Shown: in pieces, positions 34,140 to 43,765 of the stretch
Layout of the letters: every line of letters begins with the position of its first letter
Numbering within the stretch: position 1 is the stretch's first letter
NCBI GenBank assembly: GCA_904063045.1
Contig: CAJFCJ010000010.1
Location: 372,001 to 436,000, forward strand
DNA from: Dimorphilus gyrociliatus
Taxonomy: Eukaryota > Animalia > Annelida
Reading direction: 5' to 3'
DNA: 64,000 nt
Notes under the pieces: generated by a model
Told to the model about the DNA's origin: nothing
Databases searched by the model: none
What the model saw: only the letters and a program-made list of their open reading frames with translations
Made by a program: the position numbers and the translations under genes

Positions 34140-34172
<33 letters not shown>

Positions 34173-34222
34173 TAATTACGTCTTTTGATAAAACGCGCCA
34201 AAAATAGAACACTTCTTATACG

Positions 34223-37200
34223 TTAGACGTAAATTTCAACAGTTTTTCCATTCAGATAAGAACGTTTCTGCAGGTTAAAACCAATTTCGTATAGCCCTTG
34301 CTGCTTAAGTACGCAGGAGAAGGAGCGAAAGCCTCTTGGACCTCTATACTGGAGGATGTCGATGAGTTTATAAACTCTTAAATTAGCCGGCTGTTTCATC
34401 ACCTCAAACTGGAGGGTTTTTGTAAAGATTTTCAATTTAATTAAGTCTCTTAATGCGGCATTACAATCAAGTTGTTCATATAGGTCACATCGGCTCTCTT
34501 CTAAGGCTTCAATTTCGTTGGGTAAAAGTTCTGTTTTGAAAATAAGCAAAAAAGTATTAAATTTTACAGAATCCACTAGGTGGCGACAACAATAAAAAAT
34601 TTAGGTCTAGAAAAAAATTTTCTGTAGAAAGTTCCACCTACTGGCATATTCAATCATCATTCCTTTCACATAATCAGCACCGAGCGGGCAGGCGTCAAAA
34701 GCGTCATTTCCATCGCTATCCTGAATTGTACAATCAGCACCATTTTCTAACAAAGTTTTAATAGCATTAATATTCGTTTGAGAGCAACCCGAGCAGGCCA
34801 ACATTAGGGATGTTCGACCGTTTTTGTTCTGCCGATTTGCCTCAGCACCATATAGAAGAAGGCCCTTAATGCATTTGACGTTAACTTTCAACGGCTCATA
34901 GAAGCAATAATTCAGAGCTGTATCACCTTGATTATCAGCCAATTCATAATCAGCTCCCAATTTTAGTAGATAACATACACTGGGATAATGACCTCCAAGA
35001 CAGGCAAGCATTAGAGGTGTCCTTCCGGTGCAATCTATCGAGTCTATGTCAACAGATCTATATTGAGGTATTTTTTTAGACCACGTGACGTGATTTTTAA
35101 ACAGAACAGGAATAAAAATAAATGAAAATGGGTTATAATTTATCTCCTTCTTTCGTCTTTGCGTTATGTTTCTTACTTAATGGAAATCTATTAATATTTG
35201 AAATATCTCTCAGATAAGGTTATCAGTCACGTAGCTTTCGTGAAAAATTAAAAAAAAATACCCCAATAGTTGTTGCATCATAAAATGACGACCATGGAGA
35301 GCAGCATGATGTAAGAGTGTCATTCCATTCTTGTCACGATTAGTGGCGTCAAAAGATTTCAGGTAAATAAGTTGATCAAAAGCAGCAAGACGACCAGACT
35401 CTATACAAACAGTTAATAGGCATTTACCATCAGCATCTCTCTGAACAATTGTTTTGTTTAATAAAAATTCCATTAATTCTAACAAGCCTTTCTCAACAGC
35501 GTAGAACAATGCGCTGCGTTTAGATGAATCGACGGCGCTGGGATCAACGATGATTTCTTCTATGAGAAACTTAACAATTTCAAAGGAATACCTAGGAGAT
35601 TTGACTGCCAGAATGAGTGATGTACTGCCTTCGTTATCTCTGTCAGAGTTTGGATCATAGTACTTTGCCACCTGGGATAAAAAAAGGAGCAAATATGTCA
35701 ATTTCAACTTAATACCAATTAGTTAAATTAGCTCATAGTTAGTACCTGTTCCAAGAGAGGAAAGTCTCCTCGATAAACGGCGTGCTGTATTACGGTCCTT
35801 CCTTTATTCTTATCTCGACCATTAACAACTTCCGCCAAATTTGAGTCACATGACAAGATAAGTGACGCTATGTTGTCATTTCCGTCAGCTAGGCTTTGAG
35901 CAAGAACGCTCTCGCCCTCTCTGTTATTCCGGAGAAGGATTTGCGAAGATAAAAGCAATTTGATTATCTCACAGTTCGAAGAGTTGTAGGCAAAGAATAG
36001 AGCGCCATTTCCGTCCTCGTCTTGAGCGTCCAGATCGATTTGTAGGGCGTTTCGATTGTTCAAATACAACTCGACGATATCTCGGCGACCAGCCGAACAG
36101 GCTGTTGAGATAACTGTCCTATTCTTTTCATCCGACTGCGGTTTGATATCATTCTTTATTAAAACGCTTACAATGTCAACGTCACCGCTTTCTGTCCTGA
36201 ATAAATAAAACTATTTATTGTAAATTTGTATTGTATTCTTGTTTTTTATTGTAAGTTTTATCCCGCAAAAGTGAAGGTGTTTTCAACATTAAAAATAACA
36301 CTCTTTACTTTTTGCTCTTTACTATTGAATTTATAAATTGATAATAAGTAAAAGAATGTGTTATTACCCATAGAAAAGAGCGTTTCTTCCTTCGCAGTCA
36401 GTTTGATGAATAGGCAAATTTAACGAATCTTTTTCCCTAAGTAAGTAATGAACCATTTCCAGTTGACCGCAAGATGATGCTTGCATTAGAACTGTTCGAT
36501 TTCTATTATCGCTTTCAACCCTACAAATATGATTTAGAATTTATGGTCTGTATACTATTTCGTTTAACAGCTCGTTTATAGAACTAAAATAGTCGCTTAC
36601 TCACTTAAAGGAACAAAATATATTCGCTGCCACATTTAATATACTATAGCTTTATACTTATTACTTTTATTGAAAAAACGCCAGGTGGCGTGTTGTAAAA
36701 ATTAACGTCTGTGCCTAATATACAAACGTTAACGAACACTGAAACCTCCCCTCTTCCACTGTCTATAGTTATTACTCAAAATTCAATAAAGACTATCCCC
36801 TTGACAACTGTAGTAGCCAAAAACCTACCCCCAATTGCCTAAAACATCACTTTCGACTGTATGATTCTATCTAATGAATACTCATAAATGTTATTTGTTC
36901 TTGCCTAACGAAAACTGCTCCCACTCTCACGTTAACTAGAAACGAAGAAATAACTAATAAGCAAGAATGCAATTACAATCTCTGGCTTATTTTCTTTGCA
37001 GAGTTTGTTTGGCTATCGAAGCGTAAAAAGATTGAGAATCAATGACCATAGGGCTGGTTGTTATCGATATAGTATCGGTGATCATTACCCCAATCATTCA
37101 AATTTATAATAACTGTTATGGTTTATTATTTTCGGATGAAAGAAGACAGGGAACAAAAATCTATAGTCTTTTTTTTAATGGATAAACAGTATAGTGTATA

Positions 37201-40200
37201 TTGTATATAGCATAGTTTTTCGTAGTAAAAATATACAGTTCGGAATTAGTGCTCAGCAACCTTTCTCCTAACCTAGCTTATTAACTTTGGATCCATCATC
37301 TAGCACTTAAAATAACGATTAATGCCTTGGGACGACCAAGACTTTGTCATTATATCGTACGTATTAATATAAACGTCCAGCTGGCAATAAGTTTGCTTAC
37401 TCATACGTACAAACAAAAAACGTAGGATTAAAATATAAAATGCATATGTGGACAAAATAAAGAATAGAACGGAAACAGACGTAGAGTGGAAGGTAAAGAT
37501 GGAAGAAGATAAAATGAATTCGAAAAGAAATGACTATTTCATGTGATAAAGTTAAGAAAGAAGAGAAAAGAAGGAACAGAACGAATGAAACGAGAGAAAG
37601 CAATGAAAAAATTGTTGCAAGCACAAATATTTTCCCACTACGTCAACGCTGACAACTGCAACAAGCTGTAGTGATTTATTACGGTAGACGCTTACCTCGC
37701 ACCAGCATCTAGTAGCGTCTTAAAGATGTGGACGAAGCCGCTGGCAGCGCAGTAGAAGAGGATGTTATTACCGTCGTTATCCTTGTCTGAGATGCTTATC
37801 TTGGAGGAACTGAGTAGGTCGTTGATGAGATCTTCGTGCCCTTTGTCCACTGCTTCCATTAGGATGTTCATTCCATTATTGGCCTTGGAAATTTTGGCTC
37901 CCTGCTTCAACAGGTAGTCAAAAGCTTCCTTATTATTACCTTTAAAGAGAGAGAATGAAATATAGATGGAAAAAGCTTGAAAAGAGAAAGCAGGGAAAGA
38001 GGAAGGAGTAGTAATAACACAATTACATCGGATACAATACGGATATGATGGATAGAATTTTCGGAAACGTATACGCACGCATAATGCTAACAAATTGCTC
38101 TTATGCATTCCGTATTGCATGTATATAATATAATCTATCTTAGTTCTATATATACAGCATATATAACTTATTATGCTACTTTTTTCCTTTTATCGAACGC
38201 GTATATTATTCAATAACCTTTTCCGCCTTACGAATCATAAACTATTATATTCCAAGGCAAAGCAGAATCAGAATCATTTTTACAGCGCATGCGTATTGTC
38301 TTAGGAGAAAGGTATCTTTACAAATTATTAACTAACAATACTGGTCACATGTTGTTAATAAATTATATAAAAACGACGCAAAAGAAGCTTTTTTTTTTAA
38401 TAAACTATTCTACCGTTAAACATATCAAACTACGCCAACAAACAAACGCCTGTATGAAAAATTAATGGCCGGAGCCGGGTGATCGGACTGGAAAGAATCT
38501 CGTTAAATCTCATTTAATTATACGTCACGGAAAGGGGAAACCAAATATATATAAATACATATTTTTATACTGTATGTGTAAAGAAAATTGCCAATTACAT
38601 ATAGTTTTTTTACCTTGAATCGCGTAGAATAAGGCATTCCAACCGTCGGTGTCCACTTGATTTACGAATACGCCAAATTTCTATTAAAAGGGAGAAAAGA
38701 ACAAATGAAAAATTATAAAAGACAAAAGAAACGGAATAAAGAAATACTATTTGTCTTTGTAAATGTTAATTAAAAGTGTTGTTTTTCTTCTTTTATTATT
38801 TAATTGTAGTTAAAAATATTGGCCTACATATGAACTGTTTTTTAACGCATATCAATCAAAAACAAAGAGAATCAATCGATTAGCTTATTGACCGTTTTTG
38901 GAGTGAGAACACGAGAGGGAGAAGGAGGGGCAGAAAGAGAGAATAAGTAAGTGAATGAGTAGAAGAAAGGGGAGGGAAAGAGGGGGAGGGAAAGAAGGAG
39001 AAAATGAATGAGTAGAAGAAAGAAGAGGGAGAGACGGATTATGTACAAACATGTTGGTATATGCTTTGTAGGCTTAGCAAATGAATATAAAACAAAAACG
39101 GTGTTTAAATAAAATAAGAAGGAAGATATTGAGATTTTCTTATAAAAATTAAATGAGATCGACTTTTTTCAAGGAATCATTGATCTAATTAGTCGATAAA
39201 CGATCGAAATACATAAGGGAGAAGAGGAAATAGCAGAGAATGAGAAGGGTTTAGGGTAAAGTTTGTAAAGAGGAGCTTAGGGAAAGAGAAAAGAAGTTAC
39301 AGACAGTTTTTCTGGAAGGAAGTAGAAGATGAAGGGCAAAGGAAAGAAGTACAGAAAAAAATTCGTTCGCGTGAGTACAAAGCAGCTTTTCTAAGCCTTT
39401 TCACACGGCGTTCGTAATTACCTTATTCCAAAAGCGATAAAGCAAAGTTAAAGTAAGTATACGTGTATATATATGAGCTTTGGGAATGAAGATTTCTTCT
39501 GAAGAATATTGTCAATAGTGCGAGGGGAAGGTATAATCGACAAATAATATTAGGATACGTGGAAGAGAAAAGGCAATCGAATCTATATTTGATCCCTGCT
39601 TACCCTGGCCTGCTGCATAATATGCCTTAAAAAGACCACATCGCCCCTGGTAGCCGCCTGCATTAATATACTCCTACCATCCGCTGCCGGCGTCGCTTCA
39701 GCTCCATAATCAACTAGGGTGTCAAATAGTTCAATATCACCGCCGGACACTGAGTAAAGTAATGCGTTCCAACCGTCTTTATCTCGTGAATTAATGTCAA
39801 TACAAAATTCATCGAGTCTATCCAATATAATTTTTGATATTTCAGTTTTGTTTTTAGCAACTGCCTGCATCATAATTGTTATGTCATCGTAGCTCGGTCT
39901 AACTTCTATACCCTCTTCAATAAGATACTCGAAGAGGTCACTGTCACCAGATGATATTACATAGAATAAAGTGTTCCTTCCTTTATGATCCATAGCATTA
40001 ATATTTATACCAAGTCGTTTTGCGTTGATAATCGAATGTCGGAGCATGAGCTGATTGCCCTTCAAAGCGGAAGTCATTAACACCGTACGGCCGTCATTAG
40101 CAGCTTTTGCTGTCAACTTGTTCCTTATAAGTAGTTCGAAAGTTTCGATGCTGCCACCATCACAGGCATAAAACAAAGCATTCCTGCCGGCCTTATCAAT

Positions 40201-41291
40201 GTGGTTGATGGGAGGAAAATCTAGTTCCGCACAAGACGTCACAACGGAATGCTGATGATTAATCAGATAGAAGTTTCTTTTAATTAATAGATAAATTTAA
40301 TAGGATAATTCAAGGATAATTTTTAAGAGAAACTGAAAATTTAATAAATGTTAACTCTGAATTTAGAGGAAAATGAAAGTGAATTTTTCTTTTACGAGAA
40401 AAGTGTTATTTTTTAAAAGAAAAGAAATTAGGGGCCATATGTAGTGACGTCTTGTGCCATACTTGGTTGATTGATTAAATATCGAACAATTGAAATATGA
40501 CCACGTAAAGATGCTTCCATAAGTACACTAACACCAGACGAATCTGAAATGAAATTGGCACCTTTCTCTAACAAAAAGATGACGGTATCTAATTGACCAC
40601 TTGCAACCGCATAAAACAGAACATTCTTTCCATCGTTATCCTTAACATTTAAACTTGCTCCTTTAGAAACAAGATATTTAACAACTTCTACATTATCGGC
40701 GAAAGCCGCTGTCATTAGGCAGGTAACACCGTGCTTGTTAGGCAGTTCGAAGAAAGCATGGTTATCGATTAAGCACTTAACAATGGATAGGTGACCTTCG
40801 AGGGACGCCTCATGCAAAGCCGTATCACCTGTGCTGGTTTGAGCGACTAAATCTGCACCATGTTTAACAAGTATATCTACCATTTCCATTTTTCCCAAAA
40901 GGGAAGCCAGATATAATGCTGTAACACCGTCGTAGACAGTTAGGTCTTCTATTGAGCATTTTTCGTTGATCCCGTATTGTAAGGCTGCGAGATATTCTAC
41001 TATATCCAAATACCATCCACAAACGGCGGTCAACAAAGGTGTTGCGGCTTTTACATGAAGTTCTCTACTACCGGATGGTCTTCGTATGTAGAGTCCTTCT
41101 ATATCTCGACTTTGTAATAGGTCTCGCCGCTCGGAAGTTGAACAGCTTTCCAGTAGGGACCGTATTGTGTCCAAATCGCCCGATTTGATGGCGTAAAAAA
41201 GACTGGAGGCCTTATTGTACATCCTTCTCTACTAATAAAAAAAAGTCCATAGTCAACCTTTCGAACTTTGTACCTGTGGAGCGGTAAACAT
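34223..41291 (-). CDS. Large ankyrin-repeat protein with a FEM1-like N-terminal ANK module and a C-terminal CARD; 10 exons, about 1164 aa
   Basis: Exons 41291-41274, 41228-40463, 40220-39604, 38680-38614, 37939-37696, 36520-36368, 36196-35746, 35671-35262, 35057-34642, 34575-34223. Every junction is GT-AG and in phase. Repeated D..G.NALFY / G..xLMxA ankyrin units; the last exon is death-fold-like (R.DL..QLD...L..L....IF......R..KLIDIL..RGPRGFRSF..VL). Confidence 0.88.
38285..38293. promoter_or_regulatory. NRF1-like GCGCATGCG site inside intron 4 of the ANK-CARD gene; candidate internal promoter
   Basis: Same core as the Tim17 promoter sites. It lies about 47 nt upstream (minus strand) of ATG ATT C|gtaagg at 38238-38232. 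Confidence 0.45.
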
Positions 41292-41365
41292 TCGACGATA
41301 AGGCAACCGTTGACTAATTAAACTGCTGCTTTACAGAGCTCTACAGCGCCAGTTATAGAGCACGT

Positions 41366-41916
41366 ATGAGAGAACCTAGTATTTTGATGTCGGTTGAGGG
41401 GGGGCCGAACGTGAGAGCTAGAATAAGAAAGAGGTGCTGCAAACAAAAACTGTACAAGGTATACTTTCTAAAATGATAATAAAGAGCGTTTCTATCTCTA
41501 GGGTATTAAAATTTTTCATTAATTAAAATCTTATAGGTATTTAGTAAAAATACAAGAGAAAAGAGAGGAGAGAGGAAGGGGGGGGAGGAGGAGCATAATA
41601 TGAATAGTAAAACTGCTGGTTTTATGCATATATTACGGTCCTAATTTAGATGCCTATCTGAGAATTAATTGCAATTAAACATGTATTTTACGTTTTCAAT
41701 GATTCAATTAATTCATTTAGATAGTTTTTTTTTTAAATTAAAAATAACTTGGAAAATTATTTATATTTATTTCATCATATAGAAATATTTAAAAAAAATA
41801 TTCTTCAGTTTATCCCAATATTGACTTTCATATAATCACATTCCAAAAATAGGCTTTATGTATATGAATACTCAAACACACATATATATATACTAATATA
41901 TATACATATATATAGA

Positions 41917-41958
<42 letters not shown>

Positions 41959-43765
41959 GCAGTGGTAGTAGTAGTAATAGTAGTAGTAGTAGTAGTAGTA
42001 TATATGTAAATTACTTCTAATGAAATAAAAGAAAAACAGGCTTATTTGTACTTTAATTTCTGATTTGAGAGTCACATTGTTCTTTTTTTCATGAAATTTT
42101 CGTAAATGAAAAGTCTATACTTACGCCTTTTACCTGATAACCTTCAAGTGTCTGTTTTAGTCAGCTATCTCAAATCCAGGTACAACGATTTACGTCGCTG
42201 GTCCTGCGGATATTGAGACTCTTTCATTGCACAGTAAAGATAACAATTCTCAATCCCAGAACGTAATTCAAAAGTCCGGTCTAAGGTTAATCACAGAAAA
42301 GAAATAAAAAATATTAGAAGGGTAAGGTGAGACAATTGACGATAAAGATGAGAAGAAGATCTGGAAAGTCGAGTTATAAATATGAAATTTTACACACGTA
42401 CTTTGTTTGTGAGATTATATTCTCGGTTGTAGGCTTACTTCAAGTTCAGTTTTATTTTAAGCCTTTAGTCTGATATTGACATGATAACATGTGACAATAT
42501 TGTTGCGGAATTTCAACAGTATTTTACTTTAAACAATCAAGCTGTTGGTAAATGCATTAGAAACATAAGCGTACATCAGACAAGAGAGTCTAATCGGTTT
42601 ACGCTTCGCTAACAAAAAAATTAATTATATACAGAGTTCTATTTTTAAAAGGATAAAAAGCCCTCGACGAACGTTTTGCCATCATTATCCGTAGTATATC
42701 CTACCAGAAATTGAAAGGGACAATAAATAATAGAACCAGAACTTGGAAGGAATTTTTGCCCTCTTCTAATTTATATAGTTACGCCCTTATAGTTAGCCTT
42801 GTCTAAAGGGTTCGACTAGCTAGTTACCTAAAAAAAAGCGATATATTGTCCTCAAATATCATGTTTGAAGCAGAAGCAGGAAGAGTTTTGTATTTTATGT
42901 TTTTCTCATCAAAGAGACCATGCTTTTGAATAAAAGTAAGAAACGGAGTGAGAGATGGAGATAGAGCGAGAGAGAGGGAAGGAGGGAGAGAGAAAGAGAG
43001 ACAGAGACAGAAAGAGAAAAAGAGAGTAGCACTAGTGTAAGTAAAAAAGAAAACGAGAAAAAAACAACAGATTTATATATATATATATATATACTAATAT
43101 ATATAGAAAGAGAGAAAGAGAGATAGAAAAAAAAACTAAAAAGAGGCATATATAAGGGGAAGAGAGTGTCATTCAACCAATTATAACTCGATGCCTGGAT
43201 TATAACGACCGATATAAAAGAATATGAAATAATATCAAAGTTATGCAGAAATACACATAAACGATGTTGGTCTTTTATATAAGTATACTATATGTAAGTA
43301 AAAAAAAATGCTAAAATGTCATCAAATGGATCAACTGTTATCGTATTTTGCTAAAATTCAATTTTCGTATTTTTACAAAATTCAATTTTCCCTATTCCCT
43401 TTTCAATTGTACTCTTAACCCGTGTAATTACATTTATTACGTAGAGGATATAAACCCCTGCTATAAGGTCCTTATGCGAAATTTTCCAGTTGTTAAACAA
43501 CTATAAACAACTTTTCTTTGTTTGCTTATTTTAATTATCAACTCCTAAAGGTATTTATGGAAGAATAATATATAACGTTTATTAGATACTAAGAGTCTAT
43601 TGACCCGTTAGAATCGAATATCATACTAATTTACAAACAAATTATAGATTCGGCAAAGTCTATTTATACTGTCGACTGTATACGGCACGCGAGATCTTCG
43701 GACTCAATTATCTATGGCTAAAACCTTTGAGCGTCTATCAAACGCGTCCTCTTCCTAGATTTCTG
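41366..43765 (+). CDS. Candidate orphan multi-exon gene, 3' end unresolved; exons 41366-41458, 42161-42285, 43648-43765, possibly 43887 onward
   Basis: Three stop-free exons with GT/AG ends chain in phase 0, 0-2, 2-0: MREPSILMSVEGGPNVRARIRKRCCKQKLYK|SAISNPGTTIYVAGPADIETLSLH...GLR|FGKVYLYCRLYTAREIFGLNYLWLKPLSVYQTRPLPRFL. A branch-point-like TACTAAT sits at 43624-43630. No family recognised. Confidence 0.45.
41920..42000 (+). repeat. Compound (AT)n then (TAG)n microsatellite
   Basis: Seen directly. It explains the poly-Tyr and IY ORF at 41893-42075. Confidence 0.85.

Follow-up and report, generated by a model that had tools for sequence, protein, structure and literature searches.

A FEM1-type ankyrin exon, a long ankyrin array and a C-terminal CARD in a candidate adaptor protein of the annelid Dimorphilus gyrociliatus

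A gene of the annelid Dimorphilus gyrociliatus encodes a protein in which roughly 30 ankyrin (ANK) repeats, the first of them carried by an exon of the FEM1 type, are followed by a C-terminal CARD. The gene lies on the minus strand of a 64,000-nucleotide stretch of contig CAJFCJ010000010.1 (assembly GCA_904063045.1, forward-strand positions 372,001 to 436,000), which is the whole stretch analyzed and is called the window below; all positions are those of the window. We think it probable that the encoded protein is a scaffold that acts as an adaptor or platform in cell death or innate immunity, rather than as a ubiquitin-ligase receptor or a reader of C-degrons.

When a CARD is combined with a recognition module, the resulting protein determines the moment at which caspases or immune adaptors are brought into play. 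Apaf-1 has been reported as lost in annelids, molluscs and brachiopods, in which CARD-caspases persist (PMC11463336), which raises the question of what gathers these caspases in annelids and molluscs. The gene described here is an expressed and strongly constrained candidate for this task, and is conserved in Capitella and in a nemertean. It also offers a clear case of module reuse, in that a complete one-exon FEM1 ANK1-7 unit stands outside any ubiquitin-ligase context. The claim is nevertheless limited: the module no longer has the degron pocket, databases already contain orthologs, and there is a vertebrate precedent for joining ANK repeats to a CARD.

Gene structure and transcription

Tracking of GT/AG splice sites and codon phase yields one minus-strand gene with nine coding exons (41222-34226) that comprise 3423 nucleotides (nt), or 1141 codons. 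The codon phases are all consistent and no exon contains an in-frame stop; the protein was analyzed exon by exon, and the joined frame was only counted for stops by script. An earlier note on this DNA had described a phase-consistent open reading frame (ORF) of 10 exons and about 1164 amino acids. The multi-exon, phase-consistent frame on the minus strand stands, but the exons number nine and the amino acids 1141.

Evidence of splicing comes from RNA contigs of four public runs (X6, X7, X8 and X9) aligned to positions 34226-40225. Every junction from exon 2 to exon 9 is spliced with GT..AG ends in these RNAs (runs X6, X9 and X8). A single 2735-nt contig from X9, which derives from a relative and is 90-95% alike, joins ankyrin exons 2 through 8 to the CARD exon, and a 1388-nt contig from X6 (95-99% alike) joins exons 6 through 9. 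The remaining junction, 40463|40220, is confirmed by contigs whose loose ends at 40220 read the last bases of exon 1 (X7, 99% alike; X8). Thus, the gene is transcribed, and its ANK and CARD exons are co-transcribed. The same RNAs settle the last intron, which the earlier note had bounded at 34642 and 34575: splicing does take place from the donor at 34642, but what the RNAs of X6, X9 and X8 skip is 34531-34641 (111 nt, GT..AG), such that the last exon starts at 34530 and not at 34575, and the protein is 15 amino acids shorter than had been read.

A search with the first exon returned a 91%-identical ORF (P0001) in a 13.1-kb Logan contig of a related species, L001, that is collinear with the whole gene and serves below for comparison. 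Among proteins of 145-462 amino acids, the size range visible to this search, there was a single close ortholog; the other matches were generic ANK proteins, and FEM1 was not among them. The exons (E1 through E9, all on the minus strand) and the joints between them are as follows.

E1, 40463 to 41222, minus strand: FEM1-type ANK1-7 module; starts at ATG 41222 and holds 253 codons plus 1 base; from the ORF and Pfam Ank.
E1 donor, CCAA|GTATGG, minus strand: RNA contigs of X7 and X8 show the 3′ end of this exon as their loose end at 40220.
E2, 39604 to 40220, minus strand: six ANK repeats, paired as N-A-L-F-Y / T-V-L-M; Pfam Ank; RNA contigs end at 40220.
E2/E3 joint, 39604|38680, minus strand: carried by contigs from X6, X9 and X8.
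E3, 38614 to 38680, minus strand: 67 nt, the start of one ANK repeat; both joints in X6, X9 and X8; splice sites kept in L001.
E4, 37696 to 37939, minus strand: ANK repeats; Pfam Ank; joints 38614|37939 and 37696|36520 in RNA contigs; 96% amino acid identity in L001.
E5, 36368 to 36520, minus strand: ANK repeats; joints in X9 and X8; GT/AG kept in L001.
E6, 35746 to 36196, minus strand: ANK repeats; Pfam Ank; joint 36368|36196 in X9; one 3-nt insertion or deletion relative to L001.
E6/E7 joint, 35746|35671, minus strand: carried by contigs from X6, X9 and X8.
E7, 35262 to 35671, minus strand: ANK repeats; Pfam Ank; joints in X6, X9 and X8.
E8, 34642 to 35057, minus strand: last ANK repeats and a capping half-repeat (D-A-F-D-x-C-P ... 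Y-V-K); Pfam Ank; joints 35262|35057 and 34642|34530 in RNA.
E9, 34223 to 34530, minus strand: CARD; 101 whole codons (34528-34226) and the stop codon at 34225-34223.

Comparison with L001 reveals strong purifying selection on the gene. GT and AG are kept at all eight introns, and the exons are 82-95% identical, with insertions and deletions in multiples of three only. The introns are 57-78% identical and carry many gaps. Synonymous divergence (dS) between the window and L001 is 0.63, and the overall ratio of nonsynonymous to synonymous divergence (dN/dS) is 0.066. For E1, amino acid identity is 91% and dN/dS is 0.063. The CARD exon is the most constrained of all, with a dN/dS of 0.016 and 2 changes in 101 residues. 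A tblastn search with all exons found no paralog outside the gene within the window.

Two sets of RNA contigs fall within introns. A 232-nt contig from X9 lies in the 1175-nt intron 4 (36615-36845) at a depth of 7.6, compared with 146 for the spliced contig; its source could be RNA that had not been spliced, carried-over DNA or a small transcript of its own. Short contigs from the X6 metatranscriptome touch low-complexity, pyrimidine-rich sequence in intron 2 (38709-38875 and 39324-39358) and then diverge; these are probably chance matches from other organisms.

The C-terminal exon encodes a predicted CARD

E9 alone scores 21.2-21.7 bits against the Pfam CARD model PF00619 (cutoff 23.9; E 2e-4), and its best sequence match in the PDB is the CARD of cIAP1. 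A HMMER scan of 1.84 billion representatives with E9 returned 16 relatives, and six of the ten homologs that were scanned (found at E values of 1e-15 to 1e-7) pass the Pfam CARD cutoff at 24.4-39.5 bits. The CARD of the ortholog from the nemertean Tubulanus scores 52.8 bits. In ESM Atlas, the ten nearest clusters to which a Pfam family is assigned all share the CARD family with E9.

The AlphaFold (AF2) model of E9, made with these relatives as the alignment, has a pLDDT of 85.5 and forms a six-helix bundle (residues 3-11/13-19, 22-31, 37-44, 48-62, 64-76 and 80-97) in which helix 1 is kinked or broken. Nearly all of the top 50 Foldseek matches to this model are CARDs, including those of Apaf-1, caspase-9, caspase-1, CARMA1, CARD8, RIP2 and NOD1. 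The first is the Apaf-1 CARD, with a TM score of 0.81-0.86 and a root-mean-square deviation (rmsd) of 1.4 Å over 90 residues. By its modeled fold and its relatives, then, the last exon is a true CARD, as the earlier note had supposed when it called the domain CARD-like.

In the comparison with Apaf-1 and CED-4, the predicted E9 CARD superposes best on that of Apaf-1, but sequence identity is only 16-19%, the annelid protein carries neither an NB-ARC ATPase nor a WD40 region, and its CARD is C-terminal rather than N-terminal.

Nearly all members of this CARD subfamily end in a hydrophobic tail, E-[IF]-[YF]-[VWFC] (window 34226-34243; alignment A1). The tail is disordered in the E9 model (pLDDT <50, residues 96-101). 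A PDZ-type or an intramolecular ligand is conceivable, and, far more speculatively, the tail might fold back onto the ANK groove and serve there as an autoinhibitory pseudo-ligand.

The first exon resembles the FEM1 ANK1-7 module

The proposal that the first ~250 amino acids are FEM1-like is borne out by comparisons of both sequence and structure. Among proteins of solved structure, FEM1C is the sole natural protein that E1 matches in an unbroken collinear segment, with E1 58-253 on FEM1C 40-237 at 127 bits; the highest-scoring single segment of ankyrin-1 reaches about 61-62 bits. With a profile built from E1 and its orthologs, FEM1C scores 185 bits instead of 127. Used alone, an ortholog of E1 matches FEM1C in register at 137 bits and FEM1B at 98 bits. 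In the AlphaFold model of E1 (pLDDT 79.9), the fold leads to the same proteins: the top 19 Foldseek ranks in the PDB are all FEM1C or FEM1B, and the top ESM-Atlas row is 'Protein fem-1 homolog A'. VIA-align places model residues 3-253 on FEM1C 2-237 with a Z-score of 18.6, an rmsd of 3.0 Å and 34% identity. As a control, the six repeats of E2 were searched in the same manner, and FEM1 is absent from the resulting 46 PDB matches (E 1e-8).

The correspondence holds from end to end. E1 residues 1-253 parallel FEM1C 2-237 and FEM1B 1-242 (ANK1-7) at 30-34% identity (33-34% for FEM1C), and the initial repeats share their non-canonical spacing. The loop that joins ANK7 to TPR1 begins at FEM1C residue 237 (PMC12580893), and E1 ends at the residue aligned to this position. 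Therefore, E1 corresponds to the FEM1 ANK1-7 unit, which it resembles specifically and over its full length. We infer that E1 descends from the FEM1 substrate-binding module or shares a specific ancestor with it.

Several points weigh against reading the protein as a FEM1-derived adaptor. The adaptor role is drawn from domain content alone, and the protein is without an oligomerization domain such as NACHT or NB-ARC. E9's own CARD score is slightly under the Pfam gathering cutoff (21.7 versus 23.9). As for FEM1 ancestry, it rests on ranking against solved structures rather than on phylogeny; the VIA-align Z-scores of designed ankyrin proteins (DARPins) and of the unrelated Nas6 and EHMT1 fall within 1-2 units of those of FEM1; and the ESM-feature neighbors of E1 are generic ANK clusters.

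The structural scores and the generic neighbors, together with an identity to FEM1 (28-34%) that is just a few points above that to DARPins (24-31%), are what one would see if the resemblance of E1 to FEM1 reflected a shared ankyrin consensus or convergence, such that the protein were simply a generic ankyrin array with a CARD. We regard this explanation as rather unlikely. It does not readily account for FEM1C and FEM1B holding the highest Foldseek ranks and the leading atlas row, nor for a collinear alignment that starts at residue 2-3, stops exactly where ANK7 of FEM1 ends and involves a length difference of just two residues. Moreover, the FEM1C score rises once the family profile is used, the orthologs of E1 are more FEM1-like in ANK4-5 (A-C-F-E-G-H ... 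T-C-L-M-I), and E2 of the very same protein yields no FEM1 match.

An ordered ankyrin array conserved in annelids and nemerteans

The protein contains about 29-30 ANK repeats in total, seven in E1 and approximately 22-23 thereafter; Pfam Ank is detected in E1, E2 and E4 through E8. From amino acid 167 to 610, two repeat types (N-x-L-F-Y and T/S-x-L-M) strictly alternate, which agrees with the earlier description of paired units and its estimate of roughly 20 repeats beyond the first module. The downstream array looks as though it may have arisen by iteration of a two-repeat unit like FEM1 ANK6-7. A recent expansion of the array was considered and is ruled out, given that the orthologs match collinearly, exon by exon.

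Relatives with the same architecture are found elsewhere. ANK repeats and a CARD occur together within single ORFs in P0084 (434 amino acids) and P0101 (666 amino acids), and on metagenome scaffold L004 an ANK ORF precedes a CARD exon, with the intron between them placed as in the D. gyrociliatus gene. Searches with P0101 as the query lead to two database entries. The first is Capitella teleta CAPTEDRAFT_220592 (675 amino acids; 'CARD domain-containing protein' in UniRef and otherwise 'hypothetical protein'), which is collinear with E4-E9, has the same CARD subfamily and ends in a hydrophobic tail like that of P0101, but whose model is without the N-terminal third. The second is Tubulanus polymorphus 'uncharacterized protein LOC141910276' (1089 amino acids), which is collinear with E1-E2 and later exons and has the same C-terminal CARD subfamily, but whose model starts inside the FEM1-like module. 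Both are uncharacterized. Exon-by-exon BLAST matches are also collinear with P0188, P0190 and P0193, and the FEM1-like N-terminal module is present in P0193 (residues 24-280) and P0191 (residues 1-194) at 39-40% identity. The best-conserved ANK block of the family is E8, with 39-45% identity to P0187, P0189, P0101 and P0188. Because the orthologs are collinear exon by exon, the ANK-CARD architecture is of long standing and has stayed fixed, in annelids and nemerteans at least.

The earlier note did not recognize the architecture from any named gene. It is true that no named or studied gene matches it; however, the Capitella and Tubulanus orthologs are in databases, and the combination of ANK repeats with a CARD is known from Caiap. 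Our literature search found nothing on a spiralian ANK-CARD family, and Caiap was the only ANK+CARD precedent that it returned.

Proposed function and its alternatives

We propose that the 1141-amino acid protein would be a cytosolic scaffold. Its FEM1-derived module appears to have lost the TPR, the C-terminal ANK repeats and the VHL box, as well as the Ser/Arg/Phe trio that grips a free C-terminus. The long ANK solenoid would bind one or more protein partners, and the C-terminal CARD would make homotypic CARD-CARD contacts with the CARD-caspases of the lineage and with other CARD adaptors. In this manner, the protein may act as an adaptor or platform analogous to Caiap, with the order of domains reversed.

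Caiap is a vertebrate protein whose CARD is N-terminal and is followed by 16 ANK repeats; it has been reported only from cartilaginous fish to marsupials (PMC5662874). Like the annelid protein, it consists of one CARD and a long ankyrin array only, and the same scaffold logic, in which the ANK repeats bind a partner, is presumed for both. Compared by described architecture, the annelid protein differs in having about 30 ANK repeats that precede the CARD, in its FEM1-type N-terminal module and in its spiralian lineage.

The comparison with Caiap suggests a different division of labor, in which the ANK array would directly bind and stabilize an active caspase and the CARD would merely self-oligomerize. 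This is the mechanism reported for zebrafish Caiap, the sole ANK+CARD protein that has been studied (PMC5662874), and designed ANK proteins are able to bind caspases (cited in PMC11463336). Nevertheless, transferring the mechanism by analogy seems unlikely to be correct: the domain order is reversed relative to Caiap, the number of repeats is about double, and the authors of the Caiap study found no invertebrate ortholog (PMC5662874).

The preferred reading, of an adaptor or platform assembled through its CARD, also sets the protein apart from FEM1 as a ubiquitin-ligase receptor. Unlike FEM1A, FEM1B and FEM1C, it has no TPR, no C-terminal ANK8-10 and no VHL/BC box; in their place, its first module is followed by some 22 more ANK repeats and the CARD. 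No TPR was found in E2-E8, where Pfam reports only Ank families and a repeat-by-repeat listing gives ANK throughout. No VHL box was found either, although no dedicated VHL-box model was run; the last 101 amino acids fold as a CARD straight after the capping ANK repeat of E8, so that every part of the C-terminus is assigned. The lack of a VHL box is as the earlier note had expected.

Its further idea, that a degron-reading module had been rewired to a CARD, finds no support here. In FEM1B, Ser122 and Arg126 hydrogen-bond the terminal carboxylate of the substrate, whose last side chain lies against Tyr84, Trp93 and Phe130 (PMC11053023). Ser122, Arg126 and Phe130 of FEM1B are equivalent to Ser117, Arg121 and Phe125 of FEM1C. 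The pocket was mapped by way of the FEM1C segment N-S-T-P-L-R-A-A-C-F-D-G-H, aligned to E1 134-153; PDB searches with sub-pieces of E1 gave off-register fragments or mostly DARPins and ankyrin-1. By this mapping, the Ser/Arg/Phe trio is replaced in E1 by Asp133, His137 and Leu141, of which His137 is the ankyrin consensus residue (T-x-L-H). The orthologs have Asn or Asp, Phe, and Phe at these positions. Because the pocket residues are replaced, degron sensing is not supported, and judging from these substitutions the protein is unlikely to be a C-degron reader. One might still imagine that the module recognizes free protein C-termini, such as protease cleavage products, and uses the CARD to report them to caspases or immune adaptors, since E1 aligns over the entire FEM1 ANK1-7 region, including the site of the C-degron pocket in ANK3-4; yet the change of Ser to Asp and the missing Arg speak against a carboxylate being bound, which leaves this scenario very improbable.

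A more ambitious form of the adaptor proposal is that this conserved protein, whose CARD is closest in structure to that of Apaf-1, replaces Apaf-1 in the annelids, molluscs and brachiopods reported to have lost it, serving as the platform that recruits and activates CARD-caspases, with the FEM1-derived module and the solenoid as its sensor. We consider this highly speculative and think that it is a long shot.

The 5′ leader and flanking sequence

The sequence upstream of the main start codon is organized as follows.

5′ leader, 41223 to 41370, minus strand: contains a 12-codon upstream ORF (uORF) from ATG 41291 to a stop at 41253, at the position where the earlier note had placed its first exon.

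That first exon was a coding mini-exon of 18 nt starting at ATG 41291. The window and L001 are near-identical across the leader, which is more conserved than the coding exons, yet the acceptor AG that the mini-exon would require at 41230-41229 reads TTG in L001. In contrast, the uORF start codon, its in-frame stop 39 nt on and one synonymous difference give a pattern of conservation between the window and L001. Because the acceptor is absent in L001 and the start and stop of the uORF are both conserved, the mini-exon is disfavored, and ATG 41291 more likely starts a conserved uORF. A second leader ATG is located at 41250, and its frame overlaps the main start.

Simple repeats flank the gene on both sides. 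A (TA)n microsatellite begins about 30 nt past the stop codon (window about 34140-34195), and a (TAT)n / (TA)n tract upstream of the gene (about 41893-42075) reads as a poly-Tyr ORF.

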